Source: Paragordius varius
Taxonomy: Eukaryota; Animalia; Nematomorpha
Reading direction: 5' to 3'
Assembly: GCA_964247055.1 (NCBI GenBank)
Contig: OZ176055.1
Coordinates: 4,588,001 to 4,652,000, forward strand
DNA length: 64,000 nucleotides
The position numbers and the translations under genes were made by a program. A model generated the notes under the pieces. The model did no database searches, was not told where the DNA came from, and worked only from the letters and a program-made list of their open reading frames with translations. Shown piece by piece: positions 7,338 to 64,000 of the stretch (position 1 is its first letter; each line of letters starts with the position of its first letter).

Positions 7338-8501
7338 TTAAAAGCGTTTTTATAATGATTAATTATAGTATAAAGCAGACATTAACGAAATCTTGCCAAA
7401 AATTAAATTTTTTTAAAAAATATGCATTTTTTTTAAAAAAATTTTAGTTGATATCAAAATTTAGCATTTTAAAATTTTTATTCCACATCGGCATTGCGTT
7501 TACTTAAGATTACTAGCCTATTTTAGAAGAACAAAAAATCGGGATTCCGAAGCCCACATCTAAAAATTAAATTTCTTTAAAAATATGTACTTTTTATGTG
7601 TAGTTTATCGTGTATTATAGTGATAAAACTTGGAATGAAACCTTTAACTTTAACAAAAAATGTTTATATCAAAATATGTGCGCAAATTATGCCATATTCT
7701 GATACTCAGCACTAGTGTAAACTTTCATATATCATCGTGGCCAAAACTAAAGGCATTATAAATAGCCTTATATATTATCGGAATATATATATTTCAGTAT
7801 ATTATTTTATATAATTCCCGATTTCGAAAGCAGTGTAAGTGAATTATATTATGTTATATAAAGTTATAGGACCTCATAAACCGAAAGTGTTTCTCAAGAC
7901 TCAATATCGTTTAAAAGTATCAATTTATGAGTGGGTCTGATCAGGGGTTAAATCCACTTTTGTTTTTATCTATATATAATAAAGAACACGTAAAATATTT
8001 ATAGATTTTATACAGTTTTATAACTTAAGCGACTTTTTAAGCTATGTTTTGTTTAATGGTGGCGCATTTTAAAAGAGTAGAGCTGACCCAGCGGCTTATT
8101 AAAAAAGCGCCCCAATAATATTTTCCATACGGCTATTGTTTAAATAATTATTATTTTATATTACTACAAAAACTATAATCTCCTGTAAAAAGCTTCTAAA
8201 TCAATAACACCACTACAATACTTTATTTTCAAAATCTATAGTTTTATCAGGATAGTTTTGTGTCCCAATTTAAGGCAATTTTTAAGCAAGTATATAAAAA
8301 ATATTTTTCTGCGATATTTATTAATATTGTCCATCATATTTGGGTCAATTTTATTTAAAAAGCCTCTGAGATAAAAAAAATCGTAAAAATGTTTCAAATT
8401 TATATTTTTTTGTACTTTTTTGCATATTTAAGATATCATCAGTTTATCTGTGTGAACACAGTTTATAGAATTGAATAATTTAACTTTTAAATCACCTTTG
8501 A

Positions 8502-11500: not shown

Positions 11501-14456
11501 TATTACCTTATCAATTTTTATATAAAAATTATTTTTTGGTAATTTAACCTAGAACTTAAATTTTTATTATCATATTATTGTAAATTGATTTTGCTAAAAT
11601 ATAAGGATCAAACATTTTAAAACTAAAAAATATTAATAGTTTTGGAACTTCCATATTCTAAAACATGGATATAACTTAAATCCATTTGAAACTAACAGCT
11701 GATTTTATATGTTTACTGAAAATTTTCTGTCAAACATATTCAAATTCAAATTAATTAATTTAATTTGATCCTAATTTTTTTATAATGCGCCTAAAAGTCC
11801 ATAGAAAATGGATTATTTGGCTTAAAATCACATATTTTTTTTAATTTGAATAACTTTGAGCTAGAAACTACCCGAAAAGATCCGAAAGTATTAAATGCCT
11901 CTGTATGTTTATTTTATTTCAAATTTTCTTACATTACTAATTTTTAATGAATTCTGTATTATATTTTTTAGGCATGGGACATTACGACTAAAACATGCGG
12001 TTACACCAATCACACTGTATTGCCCGAGGCTTTGGAACGTTGGCCAGTTAATATGTTTGAATTGCTGTTACCGAGACATTTGGAAATTATATATGAAATT
12101 AATTCCCGATTTTTGCAGGTCATTTTTTTCTCCTAGTGTCATAGTTAAGAAATGTGTATTAAGTTTAATATGGTAAATTATTTAAAAAAGCCATTTGAAA
12201 TAAATTAATTGTCCTTAAAAGTTTTGCAAACATGGTGGGTAGATTATAATTAAATTATCCAGACATATAAAGTTTGGAAATTTAGCCCATATCTTACAGT
12301 ATGCATTTTAATGGTTGCTTATTTCACACTATAGTTGGGCAATTCGCATCACAAGAGCTTATGGAAAAGCAACAAAATGTTGAATAAACAATCTTTACCT
12401 TTCTTTCTTTCGATAGACTACTGTGTTGCAAATTACCCTACTATAGTCTGAAATGAGCAACCATTAATATGCATTGTGTTACTAACTTTTTATTAGAATT
12501 TAAATCATGATTATGATATACCATTTACAATTCAATTTCTCCCTTAAACAATTCAAATTCACCCTTGAACAATTCAAATTCACCCTCGAACAATTCAAAT
12601 TCACCCTCAAATAAAATATATGTTTTTTAAGATTAAAAATTATTTATATTTTATATATTTTAAAAATTTTGTTTTGAATTAAAATAATACTGAAAAAAAT
12701 AATAAATTATACCATAAACATAAATTTCATATTAATAATGAATTATATTAGTTCGAAAACACATAATTTATTTTTAGGGTTTTGAATTGTTCAAAGGTGA
12801 ATTTGAATTGTTCAAGGGTGAATTTGAATTGTTTAAGGGTGAATTTGAACTGTAAATGGTATATAATTAAAATACTATTCATACAATTAACAACATTTCA
12901 GAATCTAAGGTATTTAAATTTTTATTTTTCAAAAATTTTATCATCCACAATAGTTGGTTAAAGAAAAGTGGCCACATGATGATTCCCGGCTTCGTAGAAT
13001 GTCTCTAATCGAAGAAGATGGAGGCAAACGCATTAATATGGCCCATTTATCGATTGTCGGGAGTCATGCTGTTAATGGTGTTGCCGCCATACACACAGAA
13101 ATTATCAAGAACACCACGTAAGAAATTTCGAATTTGATTTGCTTGCCAAAATTTGTGTGACATTTTATTGCTGTATAGCCGCAAATTTATACATATACGA
13201 TTTAATATAAAAAAGTAAAACTGTGGTTTCTTTTTAAAAAACCAGATTTAGATTTTTTATTTTTTGCTATAGTTTATACGATTGGATTTGTTAAAATGGA
13301 CTTGAGGGTCTCTCGACTTCAAAGCCTAGTCGTATTAGTCTATCTAAAATTAGAAATTATGGCTTATAATAAAAAAAGCGTTTTTACTATTTAAATTACG
13401 CATTATTATAAAACCTGACTTTTATTTACACATATCAGCCTTATATTAACATCTTTATTTTGTTTATATATAAAAGTTTAACGGTAACTATATCATTTTA
13501 TATTATTATTTGTGAATTTAAACGGTAAATTTATCATTTTATATGTTAGGTTCCATGATTTCTATGAATTATGGCCCCAAAAGTTCCAAAATAAAACGAA
13601 TGGTATTACACCACGTCGTTGGCTTTTATTGTGCAATCCAGGTCTTTCTGATGTGATAGCCGATGTAATTATGACTTAAATATTAATTTATTACAAAGTT
13701 TCACCAAAAAATATTAAAGTTATATTGATGTTTCATGTAGAAAATTGGAGATAGCTTTGTGACACATCTCTATGAGCTTAAACAATTGCGTGATCATTTG
13801 GATAATAAGGCTTTTGTGTTGGCCGTAATGAAAGCCAAACAGGTACAATTATATTTTACATGAAATTTGTGGTAATCAATAAGTTATGGCGCCTTGTTAA
13901 TTATTTTTTAGTTTTAAGTTTTGAAAGATTTATTGACAAAAATGTAACAAAAATAGAATATAATGTAATTATAAAAAATAGCACTATGTTCCTAATCAAT
14001 AATGGCGCATTAACATGAAATAATTTTTTTGAGATTAAAATAATTTATATTAACCAAACCAATTTTCATTATTTAATTGAAAATAATAATAGGATCGACA
14101 AACTTTATCAAGTGTGAAATGAAATCTTTCAATCAAAATAATAATTATATTAAATTTTAATTTTGATAAATATTCTGTTTTAATATTTCTTCTAAATATA
14201 TACCACCCTATCATACACATTATTTTGTAGGAGAATAAACTTAGATTTGCGTCGTTTATTGAGAAACATTATAACATTACGGTTGATCCGTCGGCCATGT
14301 TTGATGTGCAAATCAAAAGAATTCACGAATATAAGCGACAATTGCTTAATTGCTTGCATATGATTACGCTTTACAATAGAATTAAGAAAAATCCCAATGC
14401 CACTTTTACGCCCAGAGTCATAATGGTTGGAGGAAAGGTATTTACAATATTTTATA

Positions 14457-14494
<38 letters not shown>

Positions 14495-16962
14495 TTTTGA
14501 TTCTATTTATTATAAAACTCATATCTTGCTATCTTTAAACACCTTTTAATTACAGTATAGCTTTTTATTGTTAAATCAATATAACGAGGGCGAAAAAAAT
14601 TAATCATTCATATTACTTTACACCTATTAAGTCATCTTTTAGTAAACGAGCTTTTGTATGCAAATTACAACTCAATTTATATTTTTTCAAATTTATTAGT
14701 GTTATAGCAATCAATACTTTTGTCTTTTTATTAGGCTGCTCCGGGCTATCATATGGCCAAAAAAATCATTAAATTGATTTGTAATGTGGCCAAAGTGGTT
14801 AATAATGACCCCGCTGTCGGAAACAAACTGAAGATTGTTTTCATTGAGAATTATCGTGTTAGTTTGGCCGAAAAAATGATCCCGGCCTCTGATTTGAGTG
14901 AACAAATTTCTTTAGCCGGTACCGAAGCTTCTGGAACAGGAAACATGAAACTGATGGTTTGAACTAAATTCATTTTTTATTACACCTATTTCTTTATAAT
15001 TTTATCTTTCATACATTATAATATATATATTTTCTGTAAAAAAATAGAATTGATTTTTGTTTAAAAACCATATTTTTGATCCTTGATCTTGCAACTCTTT
15101 TGTATTCTGAAACAAGGAGTAGAGATATAAAGGGATTTACTTAATTTCTTATTGCACATTTATAATCGATTGTGCAATATGATAGAAAAAATGGATCAAA
15201 GAATATGGGTTGTTCAATAATTAAAATATTTATCTTTTTTGTAAATCCCTTTACTTTAACACAAAGTTTTTTTTTAAACAAATATTTTTAGTTTATTGCG
15301 CAATAGTTTATCAAATTTTACCATATAATAACGTTTAAAACCTAGTTTTTATTACAAACATTATTTTTTTTTAATTTTTTAGTTGAATGGTGCCCTTACG
15401 ATTGGAACGCTTGATGGTGCGAATGTTGAAATGGCAGAGGAAATGGGAAAGGAAAATATTTTCATTTTCGGAATGACGGTCGAAGAAGTCGATCAACTTT
15501 GGGCTAAAGGGTATTAATTTTCTCACAATTTTTCACAAATTAAAAATTTGGGTTTACAGATATGATGGTATTAAAAATTTAAATATTTAATTAGCATTTG
15601 ATGATTTGATTTATAAAAGGGATTGCTCAATTTACAACCAGTTATATTTTTTGATTGTATTGTTTAATATTGATGCTAACTTCTAATAATTTATATCAAA
15701 TTAATATGACGTTAATTTTCCATATAATGATTTCCAATAAAACACATGCGAAATTATGCAAACTGATCCACTGCTATAAGAAATCGATATTGTAATATTT
15801 CTGAAAATATATATTATGAAAAATAAAATATATGTCGTTATATGTAAGATACAATCCTCGATCTTACTATGATCGCATTCCAGAGTTGAAAGAATGTATC
15901 GATCAAATTCAAAATGGTATTTTTAGCCCGGAACAGCATGATTTATTCCACGATGTTACCAATAGTTTGTTGAATAATGACAGGTACCTTATATAATTAA
16001 TTCTCTAACCATTAGATACTGTTTGTTTGCCGATTACGAAAGTTACATTTCGACGCAAGATAAGGTGTCTAAATTGTTTCAGGTATGGTATATTATATTT
16101 TATAACTTACTTCTTCACATTTATAATAGTATTATAAATAAATTTTCAGAGGACGTCAAATATATAAAGTTAATATAGACTATTTCAACCCCGCAAATTA
16201 AAAATTCAAAAATTATCAATTTCTTATAAAGCCAACCATATATTTTATATAGATTATTAGCTTAAATCTCGGGCTGCTACGCAGCCCAAGGAAGTCCTTC
16301 GGACTTCTTGGGGGGGGGGGGCAAATATTTTGTCTTTTTACGCGTATGATCTCATATTTTTGGCGAAAAATAGCCTTAAAAACATATTGTTGAGCGGTAA
16401 GGGTATGGCCCCAAGCACACAAAATTTAAACAATGTTAACAAAAAATATTTATTCAGCTGTGATCTTACTATAAAAAACCTTAGTTATTATATTGTGCGA
16501 GGAATATTGTTCGGATTTATATTTTTACAAGCATAAAATTGAATTTTAGGTATAAAACATAAAAACTAATTGGTAAATATTTTTCTGAAAAATATACATA
16601 CTGATTTTTTTACATATAATTAATTTTTGCGTTGCAAAATAAGAAGTAAAATGGTAACCAACTCTTTTATAATAAATATTGTAATTATGTATGCAGTTGA
16701 AAAAAGATATAGTTGTTTTTTAATTTTTATGTTTTGTCTGTATAATTTTATTGCATGACTTTTAATATCTCTATTTGTTGTACGTTTGTTTTAGGATCCG
16801 ATAGCATGGACTAAAATGTGCATTTTGAACATTGCTGGAGCGGGTAAGTTTAGTAGCGATCGCACAATCACCGAATATGCCAAAGACATTTGGAACGTGA
16901 AACCGACTGATGTTAAACTCCCGCATCCAAGTGAGGCACCGAAATCTGCCGCTCGCCAATAA
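8502..16962 (+). CDS. PYG: Glycogen phosphorylase, 17 exons, 849 aa
   Basis: Exons 8502-8747, 8773-8874, 8904-9086, 9723-9854, 10135-10246, 10447-10529, 10600-10836, 11972-12118, 12954-13117, 13550-13664, 13741-13842, 14231-14437, 14735-14956, 15383-15510, 15849-15983, 16016-16082, 16795-16962. All introns are GT-AG and the total is 2550 nt in one frame. Motifs: RKQISVRGI (regulatory Ser), [40 protein letters not shown] (PLP lysine), [16 protein letters not shown]. Confidence 0.97.
12297..12478. mobile_element. Small TIR element (about 55-bp inverted repeats), Tc1-like
   Basis: TA|CAGTATGCATTTTAATGGTTGCTTATTTCACACTATAGTTGGGCAATT pairs with AATTACCCTACTATAGTCTGAAATGAGCAACCATTAATATGCATTGTG. 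Confidence 0.72.
12519..12861. mobile_element. TA-flanked MITE family A: TIRs built from 21-bp tandem repeats
   Basis: TA|TACCATTTACA...TGTAAATGGTA|TA with arms of (AATTCAAATTCACCCTTGAAC)n. Located in phosphorylase intron 8; the core is inverted relative to the other copies. Confidence 0.85.
14461..14492. repeat. (AT)16 microsatellite in a phosphorylase intron
   Basis: Directly visible. Confidence 0.95.
16257..16400 (-). mobile_element. Helitron 3'-end fragment in the last intron of the phosphorylase gene
   Basis: CTTGGGCTGC-GTA-GCAGCCCGAG hairpin plus ATTTAAGCTAA|T, and GAAGTCCTTCGGACTT shared with the other copies. The 5' boundary is unclear. Confidence 0.65.
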
Positions 16963-17300: not shown

Positions 17301-18572
17301 TCACATTTTAGGAACATTTAATAAAAAATTTGATGATCCAGGAAGGTAGGAAACTCCGCGTGATTGAGAAAGTTGATAAGCTATATCTTCGGCTGCTTCT
17401 AGCCTTCTCAACTCAATCAATCCTTCACCAGATTGTGCCACGGCTTTTGCAATTAATTCGGCGGCCTATTATATAGAATATATGATATGACCGAAATCGT
17501 TGTTGAAATACTGAAACCAAAAAAACGCAATGCCGAATTTTTTTGGTGTTTTTTATTTTATTTGTATGGTAAAAGTAGACTATTTTTTAGCACACATAAT
17601 ACGTGTAATTATCTAGCTATTTATGAATATTATATCAAAATGATTAGGCTTCCTTAAAAACGGAACTAAAATAATAATCATTTTTAAATAAGGGAATCAA
17701 AATTAAAACTAATTAGTCGCAAAAATTATTAGAAAAACCGTAACTCTGGTTTATGTGAAACCGGGACCTAAAATAAAGTTAATTTAGAATTAGAATTTAA
17801 CGGGATTATTACGGTTCATAAAAAGTAAAGTTAATTATTAGAAATTAACCAAAATAAAATACTTTTGAGTCGCCTTCAGCAGCAATAATTGCAGCTTTTT
17901 TGGTTTGTTCAGCTTTTTCGACTCTGAATCGGGCACGCTCCGCTTCTTGTTGCGCAACTTGTTTTAATTCAACGGCTTCTGTAAATTCTCGCCCAAAACT
18001 TAAATGCGTTAGCGATATATCATCCAAGAAAAGTCCAAAACGTGATGCTCTTTCCGTAAGTTCGGAATTGACTTTGCGTGAAACAAGTTCTCTTTGGGTT
18101 ATTAACTCACTCGCGTCGAATTGAGCGACTACCGCTTTTAATACCTAACATAAAAGGATAAAAGCATACTTCGTTAGTAATGGAGGGCAAAACTCTTTCC
18201 TCAAAATCGATACCCAAATTTTTGTATATATCTGGTAAGCGGTCTGGCATAGGTCGAAATAAAATTCGCAAAGTGATGCTAACATTTTGCAAATCTTTGC
18301 TTCCAGTAATAACAGGAACGTTTCTTGGTTTGGATCGAATATCAAATATAATTGGCTTTTGTATGAAAGGAATCAAAAAATGTGTCCCTTCACCTGTAAC
18401 ATTTGGTTTTACTCCTTTAAAGCGATCAAAAATAACAGCTCTTTGGCCTCCATCAACATTAAACAAGGCAGAATTTATAATTCCACCAGTAATTGCTAAT
18501 CCCAATCCTATGATTAGCGTAAAATCCCAATATACCTAATCGTCCAATGTTATTAAACAACTGGCTGCTCAT
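17301..18572 (-). CDS. PHB1: Prohibitin 1 (SPFH/band-7), 4 exons, 273 aa
   Basis: Exons 18572-18536, 18507-18170, 18144-17863, 17465-17301 (822 nt). Translation includes [83 protein letters not shown]. Confidence 0.96.
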
Positions 18573-37398: not shown

Positions 37399-38376
37399 TT
37401 AATTTCGTTTTTTGGCAGCTTGCCTGGTATAAGGTTTTTGTGGTTCTCGAAGCGATCGTCCAGGTATCCAATTGTAATAGAATATTTGTAATAAAATTAT
37501 ACTATTAAGCACACTGGCTAAAATGTATGGTAATATAACTAGCATATCCCCCGTTTCCTGAATAGAAGTGTAAATACGAGCGAAACAGCCTCCAGTCATA
37601 AGTATGAAAGTTAGGGCAGATAATTGTCCAGTACCTGAGTTTTTAAGGTTCTCTAAAATTTGTAGCACTTTACTAATGACAATTATTGGCAAGTTTGCAA
37701 GTTGAAAAGATGAAATGAGACTTAACGGTACTATCCTATAAGGACCCGAACACATCATCATAGCTATCACATATGTGATGGAAAATAGTAGCGGTTTGAC
37801 ATAATTAGTATGTGGCCGCTCATTAATTTGATTTTCATTGGGTCTCAGACTTCTCCTACCCTTTACTGGAGATAAGGTTTTTGCACTTTGATGAGTTTTA
37901 TTCGGTGGTGCCTTTCCTTGATAGAGTAAACATAAATTTGCGATAATAAATGTTTGTAGTGCGGTAAAAAAAGTATCACCCCAGGAAGAAAATGAAAAAT
38001 TTCGAGCTAAGCTATACACCATATTTGCGGAAATGGCAAATAGTTCAATACATACAGCTGTGAAGCTTATACCAAAAGCATTTTTGGCATTCCAAATCTT
38101 TATAATTTGTGGAATTTTAACGAATGCCGATCCTGTTACTATTGTATAACTAAGCAATTTGCTAATAAAAAGTGATAGGCAATTTCGATGTGGTATATCA
38201 CGACCCAAAACATAATGGGAAAACATTTGAAAAGGAATTAAATAAACAGAATTTAAAATATGTTGAATTGATTCAAACCATGACAATTCCTGATCAAATC
38301 TATGTCCAAACAAATTATGAAAACATTGTTGACCCAAATCAGTCTGTAAAAAATTAAGAAGAAAGCGGAGTATCAT
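37399..38376 (-). CDS. MPDU1: Mannose-P-dolichol utilization defect 1 (PQ-loop protein), intronless, 325 aa
   Basis: Single ORF with VKIPQIIKI (PQ loop), FSFSSWGD, GTGQLSALT, ARIYTSIQETGD. N-terminal QQCFHNLF...NCLSLFISK resembles the MPDU1 N-terminus EKCYDQLF...PCLKILLSK (recalled). Confidence 0.93.
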   Translation of the reverse strand: MILRFLLNFLQTDLGQQCFHNLFGHRFDQELSWFESIQHILNSVYLIPFQMFSHYVLGRDIPHRNCLSLFISKLLSYTIVTGSAFVKIPQIIKIWNAKNAFGISFTAVCIELFAISANMVYSLARNFSFSSWGDTFFTALQTFIIANLCLLYQGKAPPNKTHQSAKTLSPVKGRRSLRPNENQINERPHTNYVKPLLFSITYVIAMMMCSGPYRIVPLSLISSFQLANLPIIVISKVLQILENLKNSGTGQLSALTFILMTGGCFARIYTSIQETGDMLVILPYILASVLNSIILLQIFYYNWIPGRSLREPQKPYTRQAAKKRN

Positions 38377-40383: not shown

Positions 40384-42979
40384 ATGTCTAACCTTAAAAA
40401 AATATCAGTGATTGGCTCTGGAAATTGGTTTAGAATTTAAAACTCACAACAATATTTTATTTAATTTAGGGGAACGGTGATTGCCCGAATTATTGCACAC
40501 AATGTCGTAAAGCTACCGGAAAAATATAACAAAACAATTAATGTTTACGTATACGAAGAAGTAATTAATGGGCAAAAGCTAACAGAAATAATTAACACTC
40601 AACACGAAAATATTAAATATTTGCCCGGATATAAAATTCCCGACAATGTTGTAAGAAATTTTACGAGAAATTAGTTATAATGATTATTTGAATTTCATAC
40701 ATAGAAAAAAACCATTATGAAAAATAATATTATTGTAAAAAATTTAAATATTACATTATAACCCATTTTTGACGTTTTTGCTCATATAAAATTTAGTGGT
40801 TATTAAAAAAATATTGAAAACGTATTTTTGTACAATGTTTTTTATGAAACCTTTAGTAAATATTAATGGTTTTACACGAAAACCTTCAAAGGCATTAAAT
40901 ATCTGAAATAAAATAGCTAAATGGATATTTTTATGAAGATGCTATATGATAGTTTTTAAATTTTTTTTTCTAAAAATCACTTTAAAAAATTAGTTGTTCA
41001 TGCGTTGATATTAAATCATTTTTAACAAGAAATGAACTTTTTCTTTTTTCTCTTTTAGACAGCAATACCACATGTGAAAGATGTGTGCCAAGATACGGAT
41101 CTATTTGTGTTTGTGATGCCACACCAGTTTATACGGGCCGTGTGTAAAGAGATGGTAGGCCACGTTAAGGATAATGCATTTGGTCTTTCGCTTGTCAAGG
41201 TTATCACCGCATTATTTTTTAATTTTTTTAATAGTAATATCCTTATCTGTTTGCTCACTTTTAGATTCAAAGTCTTTATAAATTTTTATTTTTTGGGTAT
41301 TTTTCTAAAGTTGTACTTTTTATCATAAAAACGATTTACATATTATGTATCTAGCATTATATGAGTGACACAATAAATTAATAATCTAACATTTGTGGTA
41401 AGTTGCTATTTTATCATTACCATATTCTAGGGCTTAGATTTTCAAAATGGAAAGACAATGTTGATAACGGAAGTTATTCGTTCTATTCTTCCAAACATGT
41501 CGATGAGCGTTCTTATGGGGGCAAATTTGGCCCCAGAAATCGCGGCTGAAAAGTTTTGTGAAACTACAATCGGTAATTCGGATAACCCTGATTAATTTTT
41601 CATATATTACTATAAATTTTATAGGTTCATCTGATAAAAAGATTGGAGAAATGTGGAAAGAACTATGTCAAACACCGTATTTTCGCATAACCGTAGTCCA
41701 AGACTTGGAAACTGTTGAACTTTGTGGGGCTTTAAAAGTAAGTTTTTTAACTTGCATTATTTTTGGAATTATATTTAATTTTCAAGCTCTAATGCAAAAT
41801 ATGTTTTATCCACATATATCTTTTTATTAGTCGCTCTTATCTCATCTATTTAATAATAATCTCCATATTTGATAGAGTTTATTATCTTTGTATTTTTTTT
41901 TATACAAAATAGATTTACCATAACATTAATATTTTTATATATTCTTTCCTATTATCTCATTTAATTTAATATTTATGACTACTTTAGAATATTGTGGCTT
42001 TCGGAGCTGGTATGATAGATGGTTTGGGTATGGGTGATAACACAAAAGCCGCAATGATTCGCCTTGGATTGATGGAAATGGTGAAACTTAGTAAACTTAA
42101 ATATCCTCAAAGTAGTCATCTCAGAACTTTTTTTGAATCCTGTGGAATTGCTGATTTAATCACGACGTGTTATGGGGGCCGAAATAGGAAAGTGGGCGAA
42201 GCGTTTGTCAAAACAGGAAAAGTATGTTTGATTTTATTTTAAAATATTTTTTGTCTACATATGATGATATAATTTGATTTGGTTTATACATCGGCTACGG
42301 AGTCGTATATCTATTAGCGTTTTTAAAAATTTCCAAAATTGGGCACAAAATTCTACTTTTATATCCCGGTGAATTGGTTGGATCATCTTTGAACAGACAC
42401 CAGTTTTATATTTACAAAAACATCTACAGTGCACCCAGTAGTGAGCTTTTAAATAAACAACGCTTGAAAATAATTAGCTTATGCTGATCATCATCACTCC
42501 GATTGTTAATAAAGCTTTAGTTCATAAAATTGATTGTTTAACATTAAAAGTGTAAAATAGATTTTATTTTTCTAACTACTTTGCCATATTTGGCAAAACT
42601 AAGTTATCGTTTACAAGATCATTACTAATCATAAGCTAACATTTAAAAAAATTTCGAATTAAAAAATGTTACGGTTTTACACGTATAACAGAAAGTGGAA
42701 GAACTGGAAAGCGAATTGCTCAAGGGACAAAAACTTCAGGGACCTCACACGGCTTTAGATGTCTTTCAGGAACTTCAGGCTTCTAACCTCGAAAAGGAGT
42801 ATTGATTAATAAATATTATTTTTACCTATTCTTTTTACCTCTTATTTAAACATTTCTATAAATTATTTTTTAGCTTCCCAATTTTTACCGGCATTCATAT
42901 GATAGCGATTGGGAAAAAGCCTCCGTCTTATATCATAACTACACTTCAGGAGGAGCCCCCAATTATTGAAATTCCTTAG
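40384..42979 (+). CDS. GPD1: Cytosolic NAD-dependent glycerol-3-phosphate dehydrogenase, 8 exons, 355 aa
   Basis: Exons 40384-40427, 40470-40650, 41059-41199, 41431-41572, 41625-41737, 41988-42221, 42692-42798, 42874-42979 (1068 nt). Motifs: [70 protein letters not shown]. Confidence 0.96.
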
Positions 42980-45474: not shown

Positions 45475-48297
45475 CCAATCATTATATATTACCGGACGAA
45501 TTACGAATCGAAAGAGGTAAATAATTAATTTTTTTATAATTTAACAAATCTAAAAGAGCTTAGCTATGATAGTTATAGAATTACCTTAGTATTGATGTAC
45601 GTGAGATCCCCTTCATAATTTTTTTAAAATAAACAGGACCAAAATAGCTCGTGTTGATGATGCATTTTTCTGAATTTAAAAAAGAATTACCTATTTTTTT
45701 AAGTGACGTTTGAAGAGTCTACATTACCAAGTTACTAGTTTGTGGATATATTTTGGATAACTTATAATGAACGGAATATTTATTAAAATATAAAAAATGA
45801 ATTTATTAATAAAAGGAGTCATTTTACCACAGGGAAATTATATGGGAGAGGGCATCTACGGAAGATAGTATGTTATATAAATTATACAGATACTAAAAGA
45901 CATTTTTTTAAAAATCCTAATTTTTAAATTGGTTATAAATCTAACTCATCTTTTTGGTTGCGAAATAGGGAATATCTAAATTGTTGATATTTACAACTAT
46001 GTATAAATTGTAGTATATATGTTGGAAAAAATCCAAGTTTAGAAGACTATGATTACTTAAAAAAAAATTTCTAGCTTGTACGTTAATGAATAATATTTAA
46101 ATCAATAAATTATAGATAGATTACCATTGACGCAATGGGTTCCCTTTCAAAATACAATTGATCCGGCAATAATTTATGAGTATTTTTTACTTTTAGACCT
46201 AATAAATAGAAATAATTTTATTATCATTTTAAAACATGTAAATTGCATTGAAATAATCTAGTAAAAACGAAATCAGGTGTCCAACACAAATGGATTGGTG
46301 GGCCGCATTTTGCCCCAAAACCCGGCGGGTCGCATAAACATATATGGACATGCATAAATGATTTCTGAATCCAACATAATACTATAAAATGTAAACACAA
46401 CACAACCATTTTTCAATTGACTTATTTGTTAGTAAAAATTTTTGCGGGCAGTGTATAAAGTTTCGGAGGGCCATGTGTTGGACACCCCTGATATATATCC
46501 TATGAAATAAAATTTATATTAAATATTATAATCTTAAACCAAAACAAAGTATTAATCTCTCTTGGGCTTTGCATACTATTTGGTTATATGTTAACAAATA
46601 CGATCTAAGGTTTTTTAACTGAAAAATATATCACTTTTGATTATTTATGACTGATATATCCAGTCTTAGTGGGTTAATGCCAATTTTCCATAAACAAAAC
46701 ACGAATCCATTAATACCATTTACAATTCATATTCACCCTTAAACAATTTATATTCACCCTTGAACAATTCAAATTCACCCTAAAAATAAATTATGTTTTT
46801 TCTGTCTAATATAACTCATCATTAATATGAAATATATCTTTATGGCATAGTTTATTATTTTTTTCAGTATTATTTAAATTTTAAACAAAATTTAATTTTT
46901 CAAAAATATAAAAAATTATAAGTTATTTTTAATCTTAAAACACATAATTTATTTAAGGGTGAATTTGAATTGTCCAAGGGTGAATTTGAAGTGTAAATGG
47001 TATATTAAAGGTTATTTGTTTTTGAGTATAATCCCAATGTATGTTTATTTTAATATATGCAAAAATCACTTATTTTGGAGTAGACAACTTTGAGGCATTC
47101 ACATTCAATATTTTCATTCAAAATATTATTAATATTTTAGAAATAATTTTTAATATGCAGTTTCCAAGGAAATCGAATAATTGGTAATCGGGTGGTAAGA
47201 TTGACGCCCGCGTACAAAACTTTTCAGCGAATTAAGGAGAGCTCGAATAACAAGGACGATGATAAATACGATTTTATCCGCGATAAACCCTATTCACAAA
47301 CCTATAAATTTGGAAGTAAATTGGCCTAAGCAATATTTTTACATCACTTTAATTTTTCAATAAAGAAAATCATAATTTATATAATATACAGTATTGAAAA
47401 TATATAGTCAAAACCTATAATTCAAAAGACAAATATTTTTTTAAAAAGACAACCGTACTTTATCAAACCTTATTTTTCCCACATATACTATTTAACTATA
47501 ATTTCGAATTATATGATTGAGTGTATTAACAATTTACATCTTGCCCAAAAATGATGATTTTATTTAAAACATCAATATTTTAAAAACATAATTGTCTTTT
47601 GAAAAAAAATGTTTTTAGTATTTACTTTTTGACCGTATAATTTCATTTTTTTACTATATTCATAAGATCAAAGAGGACATTTGAGACATAATCTGGATAG
47701 TAAAAATGTTATACCAAACATTCAACCTGCATACTCCAATAATGACAAATTTCGGATGAATTCTTTCACAAATCATTATTACAAGCCACCAAAGGAATAC
47801 GAGAAAAATGAGTTGCCTAAACCTCAACCATTTTATTATAGACAGAGTATTAACTTATTTATTGTATTTAAATACAAAAAACAAGCAGATTATAATCCAC
47901 CCTAAAAGCATAAAATCAATTTAATCAGGGCATCGAACCGGAATCGCAATGTTACCGGAACCCGGTTCCTGAGATTTTAGCAAGAAACGGTGCCGTTGGG
48001 TTATAACCAAGCCGGTTCCGGTTCCTTGTTCTCCCAGGAATCGTCCCGGCGGTTTCAAATTAGCAACCAGCCAAGCAACTGTCCAGGAACCATTTCGTTT
48101 TCGGTTCCATTTTTTTCGACCCGGTTCTAAGCCCTGATTTTATTGTTTCCATAATACATGATTTTGTTCATTCGAAAACTGGTATATGAAACTAATTTTC
48201 ATAATAAATTTAATTCATATATATCTTAAATTTGATCATGTTTGTCTTTAGATGGTCAAGCTTATGGCGATATCCAGGATTTGGAATTTGAAAAAAA
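45475..48297 (+). CDS. Uncharacterised multi-exon gene; internal exons only, start and stop unresolved
   Basis: Exons 47161-47315, 47667-47846 and 48252-48297 have AG/GT boundaries with compatible phases and read FQGNRIIGNRVVRLTPAYK...HYYKPPKEYEKNELPKPQPFYYRQNGQAYGDIQDLEFEK. Exon 45475-45516 is possible. No family recognised. Confidence 0.45.
46274..46490. mobile_element. hAT-like MITE, second family
   Basis: CAGGTGTCCAACACA...TGTGTTGGACACCCCTG. The CAGGGGTGTCCAA-type terminus is typical of hAT elements. No intact TSD. Confidence 0.65.
46714..47002. mobile_element. MITE family A copy
   Basis: TACCATTTACAATTC...GAAGTGTAAATGGTA|TA with the same core. Confidence 0.82.
47926..48136. mobile_element. 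hAT-type MITE (211 bp)
   Basis: TIR CAGGGCATCGAACCGG / CCGGTTCTAAGCCCTG, multiple GGAACC/GGTTCC motifs, 8-bp flanks AATTTAAT/ATTTTATT (6/8 match). Confidence 0.78.
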
Positions 48298-55943: not shown

Positions 55944-57495
55944 GGCTAATGTGACCAGATATTTTTAACTTGGACGCAGTACAAAATTAAATCATACTTT
56001 GCCTGTTTTTACACCATCAATGTGGTATAAAACACAGTTTTCACAAAAAATATCCTGATCAAATATTTATATATATTATGATAGGAACATATCAGGATTA
56101 TCATGGTGCTTTTGGTTTTAACCCTTACAAGTTATTAAAGAAAGTTATTCACACTTTTATGTTAAGTGCTCCGTATAAAATATGCAAAAAGTGCGCAGTA
56201 TATATTTTTTGGTGAAAACTAAATGCTTTATTTCAAAACATCACTAAAATATAACATTAACTGCATATAAATAACAAAACAATATTTTTAAATATTTTAA
56301 ATTGTTAGATGTGTGCTCTGAAAGTATCAAATTTTTTGGCTCTTTTAAAATGGACTGTTCTCTCAAAGAAAACGCAAAAATTCCGACATTGTGCAATAAT
56401 TTAAAATATAAATTAAATTTTGATATCTATATTTTTAAAAAAATGCATACTTTAAATCTATTTTTTAACAGAATTTTGTTGAAGCGTACTTCATACTATT
56501 TTCAGCATGATGGAACATAAACGGTTTAATACTTTATATACATATTTCGATAATGCTATACGTTTTCCTCACTCAGAATTATCGTGTTTTACAAAAATTC
56601 ACCAAAATATGCAAGAAAGCAAACCTTTAAATTACCTATAGTAATGTTCAACATCATCGAATTATTTAGAAAAAGGGTTTAATTATATATTATAGCGTTA
56701 CACCATTTCCATCATTCTTCAAAATAGTTGTTACAGCGTTTCCATCATTCTTCAAAATAGGTTGAAATACGCTTCAACAAAGTATCTCAAATTTGTTTAT
56801 GCAAAAAATAAGAAAACTAATAAAAATTAAAGTTTAGGAAAAAATTAAGAAATATCATACCACCCACCTAATTAGCATAGAAAACGTAAAAAAACTCAAT
56901 TTTTTAATACGAGGACAGGTTATTTCAAAATCATATGCCATTATATATTAAATTTTGAATAATATGTTACGGGAATACAATTTTCTATATAATTTCCCAT
57001 TTGATAATTTTAACAAAAAATGAACTTTCTTAACCTGATTAAATAATTAAAATATCATAAATTAATTTTATTAATATTAATTTGAAACCTCTTTTTGCAG
57101 ATGCCCTAAGTGAAAAAGCCTTTAGCCTGAATCTTACGGTGGAGCGGGAAATTTATAGTTTCGCCACTGCAAAGGCTGCAATCCTAAGCGGTTTGACCGA
57201 TCCAAAACCCAATATGTATAATTCGAGCAGAAAATAAAATATTAACCAATTAAAAATAGGTCAATCTTAATTTTTACCGTAAAATGAATTATTTCTTTAC
57301 AAATTATGGGGTTATTTTTACAGAGGGGTACTATATTAAATTCTAAAATAATTTTTTTTCAAAATGAATATTTTTAAAAAATTAATTTTTTTCAATTTGA
57401 AAAAGAAGTACAAAAGTGGGCGCAGTACAGGCGCAGTGTTTTTCTGAAAACCCAGTACTGTACTGCGAAAAACAGCCTATCTGGTCACATTAGCA
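55944..57495. mobile_element. TA-flanked TIR element, copy 2 (direct repeat of copy 1)
   Basis: TA|GGCTAATGTGACCAGATA...TATCTGGTCACATTAGCA|TA. Colinear with copy 1 but with extra internal sequence and a local duplication of about 33 bp near 56705-56760. Confidence 0.72.
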
Positions 57496-57608
57496 TAGGC
57501 CAACCAAAAAGTCTTAGCTTTATAAAAATTCCCTTTTATCTTGCCGATCACGACGTTCTAATATCCTTATTGAATATAAATATAATTAGATGTTTACTTT
57601 TACTTCAG

Positions 57609-60600
57609 TATGATAGGGCGGATAGTTATAGAGTGGCTGTCACAAGCCGAGCCAAACTTGCGGCCAAACAAGGAGTCAACACTAACAAAGATGGCGGAAA
57701 ATCAGTTGGGGATATTAGTGAAACCTCCATTCCAACTTCCAATATATTTGCCAGATTTATGTATTGGATCCTCAATTTCAACAAAATAACTGACCCCGAA
57801 GACCTAGAGCTCTTGAAAAAGGATTATGAAATTGTAAAATTTTCATTTTTCTAAGAATTTCGAAAATGGTATAAAAATCTTAATATATTAAATTATTTTG
57901 ATTTTAAATTTTGATATAGGATGATCATTTGATGAACCTAGAAGAATTTTGCATGAAAGTCGGAACAGATCCCAAAAAGGTTTCTATAATTTTTTTCGCT
58001 TTTTAAATACAAAATTTAATCCAAGATATTTGGATATAATCATTTCAATATAATTTTTCCAATGATAACTACAGGGCATAACACAGGCAAAAGCCCTTGA
58101 TCTATTGGGTAAAGAAGGCGCAAATAATATAATTTCAGGAAGAGATATACATCTGTTGCCAGGAACGTTTCCTACTGTCCTGAGTTTCATCAAAAAAATC
58201 CTGATAAATCTTTTCAACGGTTACAGCATACTGATTTGGTTAATGATGGCGCTTGCATTTCTCATATACGGACTTGATATCTACCATTTTGCTCATCACA
58301 CCAATAATATTTATGTAAGTTTAAAGCTTAACAAGATTTTTCGTTCATTCTATAATATATATTTTTTTAAGTTGGGTTAATACTGTAAAAAATTGATATC
58401 GATTGCATAGAGAAAAAATATTTTTTTTAATTTATGATTTTATTTGGATTCGAAACTTCATATTTAAGATTTTGGTAGCGATTAACTCAATTTTGTATAT
58501 ATAACACTAAATCATAAGTATAATTATATTATTTTCAAGAACATTATACCCACATTTAGCCGAAAAAATATTATATTTTTGGAGGAATTTTTAATAAACA
58601 CAATTATATCATGTGTTGTTGTTTTAAGTTTTTTATATATAAAGTATTCTATTATTTTTATTTTTTGGTATATTTTAAGCTCTATTTTGGAATATTCCTA
58701 TGCCTATACAACATTGTGAATGGAATTTTGGTGACTGTTCAAAAATTCAATCCGTCAAACAAATTATACAAAGCGTTTGAAAATCTCCTACCTAAAGTAA
58801 TTGGCCATATTGTATTTTCTCCTAGATAATATACCAACAAAAAAATAAGGTCAAATTTTAAATGGTGGACAAATATTTTTTTTATTAATAAAATGTTTCC
58901 TTTGGTTTGTTTCCCCAAAATTTAAATTTAAGTTAAAAATTTAAATGTAAAATAAATTTATAATATCTAAATAAATTTTTACGTCCTTTAGAAATGCCTT
59001 GTAATCAGAGAAGGGGTTAAACGTGAGATTTTTATCGAAGAATTAGTGATTGGGGATATTGTGGATTTAAAAGCAGGATTTTCTGTGCCTGCAGACATTA
59101 GATTGACAGAATGTCCAAACGTTTTGAAGGTAAAATCATTTTTTGCTATTACAGTAATACGTAAAAATTAGACAAATATTTTAAGGACGGCCATATTTTT
59201 GAAACCTTGATTTTTTTAATATAAATGATCGTTTTGCGTTTCAAAAAATGGAATAGAGAGATGAATTCGTAGCACATTTAATTATATATTTAATTGAAAT
59301 CATAGAGGTAGAAAATATCAAGGTATGAAAAAGTATAGTTATCTTTATTGCAGGAAAAATATTTCCCTTTTAGTTTTTACGTTTTGTCTGTATGGTATCA
59401 ATTTTTACCGTGTTGTTATAATTTTATCGCAATTTAGGTGGATGCATCTAATATAACTGGAGCTCATGATATCCAAATTAAACATCATAACTTTTATGCA
59501 AACGATGCCATATACAGCCCAAATATGCTTTTTGCGTCAACCATTATATTGGAAGGTTTATATAATATATATATGGTTTGCGTCAGACTGGTTATGAATG
59601 CATTCAGACCGTAATAGTGACCGCTCTAAAAATATATAACCACTAAAAAATTAAGACGTACGTTTTACGACGTATAAATTAATTGTTATTTTAGCATAAA
59701 ATCTTATTTTAATTTTGTTAATAATATTAATAAAATCGAATTAATTCGATAGTTTTCTTTATTTTGGAACATTTCCGGTATTATTGGTCATCACAGATGA
59801 ATCAAGGGTCAGACCGGTGTTTTTGACAAACCTAACCCTATTAAAATATATATTATATACAAGAAATTACATTTAATTATGGTTCATTAACTGGCGGAAC
59901 TGCGGACCCCCGCTACAAGAAAGACACTTTTTAATTATTTTGCAATGGGTTTAAATTTAGGGGTCCTTTCTCTTTGGGTGTCCATAATTGAGATCTAAAG
60001 TTGTGTTGTGTTTATTTTTTTTACTTTGGCCGATAATTATCCAATTATTTTACCAGGTCGGGGACGAGGAGTCGTCATAGCGACAGGAGAACGAACTTTG
60101 CTTGGGCGCATAGTATCATTGGCCAACCGAATGATAAAAATAGAAGTTCCTTTCATGGAAGAAGTCAGAGATTTGCTTTCCTACAAAACTGTCATCCTAA
60201 TTGTTCTTATTGGCATACTATGTTTGATAGCGACTCTCGTGCTAAAAAATTACACTTGGTTAGATGCGCTCATAACAGTTTTAACGGTGGTTATTGCGGC
60301 TCTACCCTTTACATTTTATTCCACCTTGACGGTAAATTTTAAACAAATTTTATTTATTAATAGGTAAATCAATGTTTGTCTGATATATTTATATTTGTTA
60401 GTTTGGCATGGTATGGATTGACAAAAATCGATTTTCCAAAGCAGGGAAAAGGAGTGTCACTCAATTCTTTACTTTTATCAAACGCTTTTGGATACGAAAC
60501 TCCACAAATTCTAATGATGCAAATCAAAAATGTAATCGAAAACGATTCGTATTACGTAATCTTGAAGCGATAGAAACTATGGGTTCATTAACAACACTTC

Positions 60601-63600
60601 TTATCGATGAACATTCGTTGTTTTTGGAACCAAAGAATGTTAAAATTAGCCATTTCTGGTATGATGGACGTATTCATAGGAGTGACCCTAACTCTCCTTT
60701 CTCTTGTTCTCGAATGATATTTGGACCACAAGACGAAGAAAGTATTCCCGTTTCATATAATTTAAATATCTATTTAATCATATTTTAAGTATTTTATATT
60801 TTTTAAAGTTATTAATGCGCTTGTTTCTCGTAAAAAATTATTAAAATTGTAAAATTTTGTTTTGCTAATAGGGATCGGGGTTCACACAAGAAACGAAAAT
60901 TGGCACATTCTAACTCGAACAATCATTTGTTGCTCGCCATATTTGGAATCCAAACCATATGATCGAAATAATGTCCCATCCCTCAATGAGTTTTCAATTA
61001 ATTTTCCAACCTTAAACTATGATACTAATTTAATAAAATAATATTTTGTAAAGTCATTGTTATATCTATAATATATTCAATATTAAGCAAATAATCACGT
61101 TTTCCTATTTTTAGAAGGAAAAGTATAATTATAAATATTTTAAATGAAATTATAGAAATCATTCATATTTAGTATTAAAGAAAACGCGATTATCAGTTAC
61201 CTCGAAAGCATTCAACCAAATATTACAAAAGTTCGCGACATCTATCGCAAAGTCGTTGATGTTCCATGTAAAACAAAACAGTTACAGGTATTTTCATCTC
61301 AATTTATCAAAAATAACTAAATTTGTACAAATAATGGCTTTGTAAAATATAATTTGGAGATATGAAGAATATTTTGATATGCAATACATTATCACTTGAT
61401 TTAATGCAATTTGATATCATGATAAAAGCTATGATTAAAATACAATCAGTTTTATGGATAGGCAACGCTAAAAATAAAATAAATAAAAACAAAATTTTAT
61501 ATTAAATTTTTTAATCTGAAAAAAATATCATTTAGACCTTAAATTCACCCTTGAACAATTTGTCACCCTAAAAAGAAATTATGTGTTTTCGGGTTAATAT
61601 AACTCATCATTAATGTGAATTATTTCTTCAAAGCATAGTTTATTATTATTTCAGTATTAGGTAATTTAAAACAAAATTTTATGAAAAAATATAAAAAATG
61701 TATGTAATTTTTAATATTCAATTACACATAATTTATTTTAGGGTGAATTTGAGGTAAATGTTAAAATCTATAACATAATATAGATGAGTATTCACTTGTA
61801 TGAAAATATAATTGCACCAAGCACTAACACAGGCTATAGCAACTATAATAATAGCTGGAAGCATTACGCTTTTTTAAGAGGACATCCTCTTTCTATCCTA
61901 GCAAAATGTTCCACGGTATGTATTGAAGGGGGAAGGGAGCTCATACTTAACGATGAATTAAAACAACTTTATGTTGATGCCTATATCCAATTGGCAGGGG
62001 ACGCCAAATTGCCAAATAGGTTTATATAATTCATGTATAATGATAATGTATTTAAAACAGAGCTTCGAACCTATCTCGAGGAGATTTTAGGAAGAACCGG
62101 CTTAGTTGGGTCGGAACCAACCCGGTCCCGGTTTTATTTCTTAGGGAGCCACCCGGCTCCGGATATAATATTTTAGGACCCACTTCGGTTTTATTTTTAA
62201 ATTATTAGGAACCAAGCCGGTTGCGGTTCAAATTTTTCGACGCGGTTCGAAGCCCTGATTTCAAAAATCCATTTTTTTATTAATCTAGTTTTTCATTGCA
62301 TTCTAAGATAATTTAAAAATAATTAATTTTACTTTTTGTAATAATATATAAACCTATTTAATTGATAAAGTACCAAACTTTTTACATATAGCGATAAAGG
62401 CGTTTTTTCGGTTGTAATCCTGGTAAATCTCTTAAATTTCCAATTTTATTATTAAGGAACGACATTGAAGAAAAAACTGTGATAGCTTATGCCGAAGCGC
62501 GATTAAACCCGGCAAAATTCCCAAAGAATTTCGATTTCTTGGAGTATTTTGGGTCCCTTTCTGCCGCACGACTATCCAATGCCCAAAATTCACATATGTC
62601 ATCAAGTCTTAACACAATCATAAATTACAATCAACATTCAACGCTTAATAGTTGTTATACACTGAGTAGTAATTACAATACATCATTGAATCCTTACTCA
62701 GGTTCTTCTTCAGATTTTGGTGGCGCTTTAAGTGGTGGAGGGTCCGTACCCTATTTGGTTGAGGACGAAAGCTATTTGTTCGAAGAGATGGACTTCCGTT
62801 TGGTAGGAATGGTTGCACTCAGAACCTTGGCTCAACAAGACAAAAAATCTACGCGATCTTTAATCAACAGATTCAAAAATGCCGGAATTAAAGTATAATA
62901 TTTTTAAATAATATAATTTGAGATAGTTCAGTCAAACTCTTTTTTGTGGATTATTTTGATAAATTCCCCCTTTTTGTGTAAAATATTTTTTATCCCATTT
63001 GTTGTGCTTATATAATAATTTAAATTCGGTTAAACATATTTATTATTTAACATAATTTGAATTCTTTTATTGAATTTATTGTTTTGACCAATAAATGTTA
63101 AAAACAATTGAACAAATCTAGCAATTTCTGGGTGTATGATGTTAAAAGTTCTGATAATATTTTAAAGGCACATAACCTTTTGTGACGGTTTTTGAAAATT
63201 ATTTTTATACACCCCTATCCTAGACAATAATAAAAATTATTTTTTATTACATAGAATATATTGCACAGTCAAGTTTTTTTACAAGAAGGGTTTTACTGTT
63301 GCATATATTAAAAAATAATAAGAAATTATGTAGAATTTTTGGGATCCATTTATGAGATATTGAAATTTTAGGTAATGATTTTAAGCAAAGAGGGCGCAGA
63401 AACAACCAAACAAATGGCAAAAAATTATGGAATATTTGATGAGAATAGCGAAACTTTGGATGATGTGGCCGAAAAATTGAATCTTACTCTAGACAGATTG
63501 GATCCCACGTAAAATCCAATACAATTTAACATTGATTTAAATTCAAAAAAGTCTTTTTCGCGTTAAGTTATTTGAATCTAATGTGATATATATAAAAAAT

Positions 63601-63809
63601 TATAATTGTTAACATTAGTCAAGCAACATGTCATATCATTGACTGTGAAATGTTAAAGGATATGTCGTTTGCCGAAATCGACAATACACTTTCAACGCTT
63701 TTATACAACCATTTCAGCAACAACAGTGCAGTAAATACAACTCTAAATACGGTGACGGATTCTTCATGGGGAAAGGGGATGGGTTCGCAAATATCGACAA
63801 CTATATCCG
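57609..63809 (+). CDS. Na,K-ATPase alpha-like P2C ATPase, highly divergent with catalytic motifs replaced; first exon not located, 3' end beyond the window
   Basis: Exons 57609-57833, 57920-57979, 58075-58314, 58680-58796, 58992-59129, 59438-59555, 60057-60331, 60402-60741, 60872-60989, 61173-61287, 61784-62019, 62457-62892, 63372-63508, 63619-63809 splice in frame. Colinear with Na,K-ATPase alpha: DSYRVA, LKKDYEIDDH, ELVIGDIVDLKAG.VPADIR, RGVVIATGERTLLGRI, RNLEAIETMGS, NAGIKVMI, SETLDDVAEKLN. Confidence 0.88.
61526..61763. mobile_element. Degenerate MITE family A copy in an ATPase intron
   Basis: AAATTCACCCTTGAACAATT plus the shared core and GGGTGAATTTGA; termini eroded. Confidence 0.7.
62058..62257. 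mobile_element. hAT-type MITE, related copy in an ATPase intron
   Basis: TIR CAGAGCTTCGAACC / GGTTCGAAGCCCTG, 8-bp TSD ATTTAAAA/ATTTCAAA (7/8 match). Confidence 0.8.
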
Positions 63810-64000
63810 GTAAATTTGATATATTTTATATTAAATTGCTAAAAATACAAGAAAATTTAAAATTCTACAGACAAACCTATTTTTTTCAAAAGACAATCAA
63901 TCGTACTTCTTAAACTTTTTTCCTATATAAATCAGTTAATTCCAATCGTAAAACATATAATTGATTGTGTTACTAGTTTTTAATCTCTATTTCATACTTT

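Follow-up and report, generated by a model that had tools for sequence, protein, structure and literature searches.

A hairworm Na,K-ATPase alpha paralogue without its catalytic motifs that is probably maintained in a non-pumping role

Introduction

Can an alpha subunit of the sodium pump be stripped of its catalytic motifs and yet be maintained as a protein? This question is raised by a gene of the hairworm Paragordius varius (Nematomorpha) that lies on the plus strand at positions 57609-63809 of a 64,000-nt stretch of contig OZ176055.1 (assembly GCA_964247055.1, positions 4,588,001 to 4,652,000 of the forward strand), which we call the window and to which all coordinates refer unless another locus is named. 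The gene is a true homologue of the P2C-type ATPases, the family of the Na,K- and H,K-ATPase alpha subunits, but residues that are needed by every working P-type ATPase are missing from it. A first interpretation of the bare DNA, in the following termed the sequence-only reading, regarded it as a maintained non-catalytic membrane protein rather than a decaying pseudogene. We here find that its reading frame is under purifying selection in two hairworm genera and within populations, and we consider it very probable that it represents a hairworm alpha paralogue that has turned into a pseudoenzyme and is maintained in a non-pumping role. Non-pumping functions of the sodium pump, in junctions and in signalling, have been argued for two decades, mostly from engineered pump-dead mutants of active proteins.

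Results

A pump-like gene in 14 exons

A three-frame translation of positions 57000-64000 and manual splicing yielded a gene model of 14 exons that join to 2746 nt, i.e. 915 codons with zero stops, and all internal exons are preceded by AG and followed by GT. The independently rebuilt model agrees with the earlier description of 14 in-frame exons with canonical splice sites, except that the end of exon 8 had to be corrected to 60741, where the donor reads GTATTC. Exon 1 (57609-57833, 75 codons) follows the acceptor ttcag and encodes the N-terminal tail, from YDRADSYRVAV at its start to LELLKKDYEI at its end. It is followed by exon 2 (57920-57979, 20 codons), exon 3 with the transmembrane helix M1 and the M1-M2 loop (58075-58314, 80 codons), and exon 4 with M2 (58680-58796, 39 codons). 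The actuator (A) domain begins with its core in exon 5 (58992-59129, 46 codons), continues with its loop in exon 6 (59438-59555), and ends in exon 7 (60057-60331), which also encodes M3 and M4. Exon 8 (60402-60741) starts with an insert behind M4 and then contains the strand of the phosphorylation (P) domain that carries the former phosphorylation site, and the nucleotide-binding (N) domain is spread over exons 9 (60872-60989), 10 (61173-61287) and 11 (61784-62019). Exon 12 (62457-62892) combines a low-complexity insert with a part of the P domain, exon 13 (63372-63508) continues the P domain, and exon 14 (63619-63809) encodes a linker of this domain together with a stretch of low complexity. 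For exon 14, the 3' donor at 63809 is provisional, because it has no counterpart in the Gordionus orthologue described below and lies 190 nt from the window end. The gene extends past the 3' edge of the window, which holds its 5' three-quarters.

Exon 1 opens at a splice acceptor, and therefore an exon with the ATG must exist upstream. There are two weak in-frame start candidates with an ATG and a following GT (57284-57310 and 57364-57435), neither of which resembles the MKHPNNP of the Gordionus orthologue. Positions 57100-57237 of the plus strand are the terminal exon of another gene upstream, which ends with ...DALSEKAFSLNLTVEREIYSFATAKAAILSGLTDPKPNMYNSSRK and a stop codon. As its stop is 371 nt away from exon 1, there is only a small space for a promoter and the start exon. 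In the insert of exon 8, we inspected by eye whether an in-frame micro-intron might be present; there is one GT...AG stretch with possible lengths of 31 or 34 nt, which are not multiples of 3, and this candidate was rejected. The window is very AT-rich, with a GC content of 24-32%.

Loss of the signature motifs

The gene belongs to the P2C alpha subunits by descent. In phmmer searches against PDB chains, the best matches were all Na,K- or H,K-ATPase alpha subunits (E 7.5e-10 with exon 7 and 1.9e-6 with exon 8), the Pfam model E1-E2_ATPase matches exon 5 (E 1e-8) and exon 7 (E 8.4e-9), and the predicted fold of the orthologue points in the same direction. The general layout of the P2C fold and the helices M1-M4 are kept.

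In contrast to this layout, the signature motifs are replaced, as seen in a MAFFT alignment with the alpha subunits of fly and mealybug, fish alpha1, and ATP12A, the non-gastric H,K-ATPase alpha subunit. In the dephosphorylation loop, TGES has become TGAH (59456-59467, exon 6). In M4, PEGL has become PFTF (60305-60316, exon 7), which removes the cation-binding Glu, and in the P domain DKTGT has become DEHSL (60606-60620, exon 8), of which the phospho-Asp alone is kept; both replacements also stand opposite the canonical motifs in the phmmer alignments to PDB chains. KGAPE is changed to RGHPL (61877-61891, exon 11), and VTGD to LSKE (ILSKEGA for MVTGDHP in exon 13, and hence SKEGA for TGDHP). 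DPPR is absent from exon 12, where the surrounding sequence is ALRTLAQQ. All six losses had been recognized by the sequence-only reading, which had placed TGAH, PFTF, DEHSL and RGHPL correctly to the base, as we found by a base-by-base check. Its RTLA as the successor of DPPR has to be qualified: the motif is absent under every alignment, and RTLA is only one of three equivalents, besides TLAQ and QQDK, that result from different gap placements.

Two further losses are those of the adenine-stacking Phe of FNSTNKYQ in the N domain (PCKTKQLQ in exon 10) and, in the same MAFFT alignment, of the Arg of GERVLGF. Together with KGAPE, these are losses in ATP binding, and the changes in DKTGT (except for its Asp), DPPR and TGD are losses in Mg binding and phosphoryl chemistry. 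What characterizes a working P-type ATPase, i.e. DKTGT, TGES, and the nucleotide- and Mg-binding motifs up to TGD, is not found in this gene.

An orthologue in a second hairworm genus

With exon 7 alone as query against 1.84 billion representative proteins, we found one sole close relative, a 1206-aa protein of Gordionus montsenyensis (84.5 bits, 52% identity), which is recorded as 'unnamed protein product [Gordionus sp. m RMFG-2023]' under OX940787.2 and which we call P0001. The second match, with 77 bits, is a canonical fragment of 353 aa that contains an internal duplication; all others have at most 49 bits and are canonical-like pumps or fragments, and the next full-length match after P0001 is at about 40 bits. 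A search with full-length P0001 otherwise retrieved only canonical pumps with at most 34% identity. Among 126 long P-type ATPases compared, P0001 alone lacks both DKTG and GDGxND. Its UniRef name is sodium/potassium-transporting ATPase, and the public record is silent on the lost motifs. In Pfam, E1-E2_ATPase, Cation_ATPase and Cation_ATPase_C are present, and Hydrolase and Cation_ATPase_N are absent.

All 23 exons of P0001 could be mapped exactly onto their locus (L001; GCA_954871325.2, OX940787.2), where they span 14.8 kb and give 1206 codons without a stop. In a tblastn search of the window with P0001, all 14 exons were matched in order, covering residues 8-879, and exon 1 is 59% identical to residues 8-76. 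Twelve of the 13 introns lie at the same residue and in the same phase as in Gordionus, the remaining one has the same phase and is at most three residues off in a gapped stretch, and the acceptor of exon 1 coincides with a Gordionus intron after residue 7. P0001 has one extra intron inside the region of exon 12, and it has the same three inserts in shorter form. With an overall identity of 50%, matching introns and the same motif losses, the two genes are clearly orthologous.

In Gordionus, TGES is replaced by FGRH, DKTGT by DDSSL, KGAPE by KGNPL and TGDHP by TSQNK, DPPR is gone as well, and GDGVND, which in Paragordius lies past the window edge, has become GRNTPD, whereby the Mg-binding Asp is gone. 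Even the replacement sequences are alike in both orthologues (LLID..SLF, G.H[DE], G.PL). As the motif losses are common to both, the inactivation must be older than the separation of the two genera.

The membrane domain gives a different picture. In P0001, the M4 Glu is kept (PESF), unlike in Paragordius with its PFTF, as are the cation ligands in M5 (S-N-x-x-E) and M6 (IDLGTD), and the beta-binding loop DSYGQEWTY is intact; the M8 Asp is replaced by Asn (QVMNV for QWADL). The M5-M10 region of the Gordionus copy has an identity of 0.54 to the fly alpha subunit, as has that of ATP12A, a divergent P2C paralogue that keeps every catalytic motif (fish alpha1: 0.78). In the two halves of the P domain, the corresponding values are 0.34 and 0.37 for P0001, whereas functional pumps reach 0.82-0.97 (ATP12A 0.82-0.94), and in M3-M4 they are 0.25 for P0001, 0.85 for fish alpha1 and 0.65 for ATP12A. 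A comparison of the two stripped copies with each other gives an identity of 0.42 or more in every segment.

The Gordionus locus also contains a canonical alpha gene. It encodes 1036 aa with all Pfam domains, lies 3.7 kb downstream of the P0001 gene on the same strand, and in the part that we read, TGES is intact and the identity to the fly alpha subunit is 70%. The existence of a canonical alpha gene elsewhere in the genome, which the sequence-only reading had named as a point to be checked, is hereby shown for the Gordionus genome. Upstream of the P0001 gene, a SKI2-type helicase gene lies on the opposite strand. From the position beside the canonical alpha gene, a hairworm-specific local tandem duplication is plausible. 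In an IQ-TREE analysis of the 190-aa region that is available for this canonical neighbour, the clade of the stripped copies has a support of 100% and a stem of 0.91, but the supports for its placement among animal alpha subunits are 37-65, so that the age and origin of the duplication are not fixed by the tree. As a side observation, the N-terminal region of the canonical alpha subunit (L001 28456-34801; ...KYDSADTVKIKK...) is less like the RADSYRVA of fly than is the YDRADSYRVAV of the stripped copies, and the start that is annotated for it at 28456 (MMVINIANF...) is open to doubt.

Purifying selection between and within species

For the comparison between species, we used the 744 codons that are confidently aligned between the Paragordius gene and P0001. 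Identities at the first, second and third codon positions are 62%, 74% and 35%, respectively, i.e. the third positions are near random for an AT-rich genome. Synonymous divergence (dS) by the method of Nei and Gojobori (NG86) is saturated and gives no value; maximum likelihood gives a non-synonymous divergence (dN) of 0.43, a dS of 8.5 and a ratio (omega) of 0.05, which is imprecise due to the saturation of dS, although dN still is far below dS.

Variants within the group come from DNA contigs of the public sequencing runs X3 and X4 that differ from the window by 1-3%, over positions 57800-63799. The sample consists of the best-supported 40 of 239 differences, of which 25 fall into exons, and these are 18 synonymous and 7 non-synonymous changes at a site ratio of 595:2150, which for this sample corresponds to a pN/pS (the polymorphism counterpart of omega) of about 0.11. 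For this many synonymous changes, the binomial tail probability is 1e-7 under the site ratio, and it rises to 2e-4 when 35% of mutations are assumed to be synonymous. Two of the seven non-synonymous variants lie in the insert behind M4.

The whole protein thus has been under purifying selection since the split of the two genera. We find neither the broken frame nor the neutral evolution that would mark a pseudogene, and we do find the fold, the lost catalytic residues and the selection that mark a pseudoenzyme. The view that the gene is maintained, which originally was derived from the open frame, is now also backed by an orthologue with the same losses, by an omega far below 1, and by the excess of synonymous variants.

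Inserts, N-terminal tail and predicted fold

The low-complexity inserts that had been noticed behind M4 and in the N and P domains are real. The first comprises about 36 aa at the start of exon 8 (60402-60527), the second about 71 aa of the N domain in exon 12 (approximately 62554-62766). An additional insert of about 19 aa that had escaped the sequence-only reading, SIPTSNIFARFMYWILNFN, is found in the N-terminal tail (57726-57782) and is absent from canonical alpha subunits in the alignment.

In ordinary alpha subunits, no other part is as poorly conserved as this tail, but it is the best-conserved segment between the two stripped orthologues (0.66 identity). They share a new motif, SIPTSNIFARF.YWILN, and a retained LELLKKD, and the RADSYRVA and LKK segments of the fly alpha subunit are recognizable in both. 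Judged from this conservation, the protein would bind its partners through the new motif of the tail together with the LKK segment that it has retained.

An AlphaFold2 model was calculated for residues 1-1200 of P0001, with an input alignment of the window exons and 22 canonical pumps that is dominated by the latter. Its mean predicted local distance difference test score (pLDDT) is 73 and its predicted template modelling score (pTM) is 0.67, with low confidence mainly in the N-terminal tail and the inserts; at the N-terminal insert, a helix is predicted with low pLDDT. The top matches in a Foldseek search with this model were without exception Na,K- or H,K-ATPase alpha chains, with E values down to 3e-73. 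The predicted structure is compatible with the alpha-subunit fold, and no particular conformational state is implied by it.

Other features of the window

Introns 5 and 10 contain stretches (59200-59410 and 61400-61800) in which, for three DNA runs, the summed contig depth is 100-1000x that of the neighbouring sequence. With their many short joints and loose ends, these stretches resemble short repeats of high copy number, perhaps related to miniature inverted-repeat transposable elements. In intron 11, a GC-richer element with repeated ...AACC(C/A)GG(T/C)(C/T)CCGGTT... units (62040-62260) stands amid the AT-rich intron sequence, and as the translation of 47924-48139 is similarly rich in G, P and R, this may be a dispersed repeat family. 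A six-frame scan of the window further revealed genes for glycogen phosphorylase (8500-16000, plus strand), prohibitin (17848-18535, minus strand), MPDU1 (37399-38376, minus strand, apparently a single open reading frame of 325 codons) and glycerol-3-phosphate dehydrogenase (40465-42239, plus strand). A database search with MPDU1 gave best matches of about 40% identity from arthropods and no hairworm match, so that the divergence of the species could not be calibrated with it.

Discussion

What could be the function of an alpha subunit that would be unable to run the E1-E2 cycle? It would act as a non-catalytic membrane protein with ten transmembrane helices. Most likely it would still pair with a beta subunit, as Gordionus keeps SYGQEWT and a canonical-like M5-M10 region, and most likely it would serve a pump-independent role as scaffold, in junctions or in signalling. 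The choice among scaffold, sensor and channel is what we infer rather than observe. We prefer a scaffold or partner role because Gordionus keeps the beta-binding loop and M5-M10, because the cytoplasmic surfaces have conserved features of their own, and because the ion ligands are not uniformly kept. That this role would be exerted specifically together with the beta subunit is a tentative proposal, based on the conserved sequences and on analogy.

The analogies come from known members of the family. The canonical Na,K-ATPase alpha subunits, such as human ATP1A1-4 and Drosophila Atpalpha, rank first in PDB both in the sequence and in the structure comparison and have the same fold and domain order at 31-36% identity, but they keep the signature motifs and the M4 Glu that the Paragordius gene has replaced, and the inserts and the new N-terminal motif are additions of the hairworm protein. 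In Drosophila, the Na,K-ATPase reportedly has a pump-independent junctional role in septate junctions and tracheal tube size, which Paul and colleagues are said to have described in 2007, and this would be a precedent for an alpha-beta complex that serves as a junction scaffold without ion transport. There, however, one active pump does both jobs, whereas in hairworms the second job would fall to a separate, inactive gene. The second precedent is CATP-1 of C. elegans, likewise an ecdysozoan alpha-like P2C paralogue. Engineered mutants of it have led to the proposal of a pump-independent function, which is a matter of debate (PMC11631496). CATP-1 keeps the catalytic Asp409 and its pump activity (PMC11631496), whereas the motif loss in hairworms is natural and fixed. 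In full-text literature searches, we found no description of a natural pump-dead Na,K-ATPase alpha subunit, which is no proof of absence, and the preprint on the genome of Gordionus makes no mention of ATPases.

What alternatives exist for a structural role of this kind? The protein could be a regulatory decoy that competes with the canonical alpha subunit for beta subunits or other partners and thereby tunes the active pumps at the membrane, without any structural role of its own. The intact SYGQEWT and the canonical-like M5-M10 of Gordionus would fit to such a competitor, and the tandem position beside the canonical alpha gene would allow co-regulation. However, the beta-binding half would suffice for this purpose, yet it is the cytoplasmic domains, above all the N-terminal tail, that are conserved between the orthologues (0.52-0.66), and we therefore regard a mere decoy as unlikely. 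The membrane domain could also function as a passive cation pathway or a cation sensor, i.e. as leak, channel or ion-binding sensor. That the pump is able to turn into a cation channel is seen in palytoxin-bound structures, which are among the Foldseek matches, and the retained ligands in M4, M5 and M6 of Gordionus are in line with this idea, but the M8 Asp is exchanged in the same protein, and the M4 Glu is lost in Paragordius. Due to the latter loss, ion binding cannot be the property that is conserved across the clade, and such a function is quite improbable. It is still less probable that the protein remains an enzyme, such as a non-canonical phosphatase or ATPase with relocated catalytic residues. 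Both orthologues indeed conserve the DKTGT Asp together with the strand around it, LEAIETMGSLTTLLID, but nothing is left of the Thr, Gly and Thr of motif I, of TGD, of DPPR, of the Glu of TGES or of the Phe and Arg that bind the nucleotide, in Gordionus the Mg-binding Asp of GDGVND is gone as well, and the Pfam hydrolase model does not match P0001. Finally, from the six destroyed motifs, the low-complexity inserts and the lack of any RNA evidence found, one might suspect an unprocessed pseudogene that died recently or has kept an open frame by chance, but a decaying pseudogene is effectively excluded by 915 open codons in 14 exons of one genus and 1206 in 23 exons of the other, by randomized third next to conserved first and second codon positions, by the predominance of synonymous variants in the sample of 40, and by motif losses that are shared by both genera and hence old.

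Several observations weigh against a maintained, non-pumping scaffold protein and need to be kept in mind. No transcripts were seen: among the public sequencing runs that contain the region, none was listed as RNA, the matches in runs X3, X4 and X6 are DNA contigs that cover introns, and in run X8, which we guessed to be RNA and which is not confirmed as RNA of this animal, nothing matches 57800-63799. A word search with residues 1-300 of P0001 gave no further members of the clade and no transcript-like fragments, and no start exon was found between the stop of the upstream gene at 57237 and exon 1. With respect to selection, the imprecision of omega and the restriction of pN/pS to the best-supported variants have already been mentioned. 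The retained phospho-Asp leaves an unusual chemistry formally possible, the retention of M5-M10 and of the beta-binding loop is seen in Gordionus alone, and the scaffold or beta-partner role is based on retained surfaces and on precedents in other animals, not on data of the protein itself.

As to the sequencing runs, X6, which is labelled as organism C, contains several contigs of 151-268 nt that are identical to the locus and that could be hairworm DNA in a host or environmental sample. Run X3, labelled as organism B, has the locus at about 98% identity and could stem from a close relative or from the same species in a sample with another label.

Taking these points together with the evidence for the pseudoenzyme, we lean, with some reserve, towards a more specific picture, in which hairworms have an old, maintained and naturally pump-dead alpha subunit, whose N-terminal motif is its most constrained part, whose cation-binding site is being eroded in one lineage, at least where the M4 Glu is concerned, and whose pump-independent function alone preserves the whole protein with its ten transmembrane helices.

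Conclusion

If this is true, hairworms have carried out a natural experiment, in which a pump-independent function of an alpha subunit, be it as scaffold, in junctions or in signalling, is enough to preserve the whole protein. A gene that is naturally stripped and yet selected in two genera, and that in Gordionus lies beside an intact pump gene, would support a non-pump function of alpha subunits independently of engineered mutants, and would offer a clean handle for separating this function from transport. The conserved surfaces, i.e. the N-terminal motif, the remodelled site of the former phospho-Asp and M5-M10, would mark what the non-pump function needs, and the protein would be a natural reagent for such studies. 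The P2C ATPases would thereby join the enzyme families that are known to spawn pseudoenzymes.

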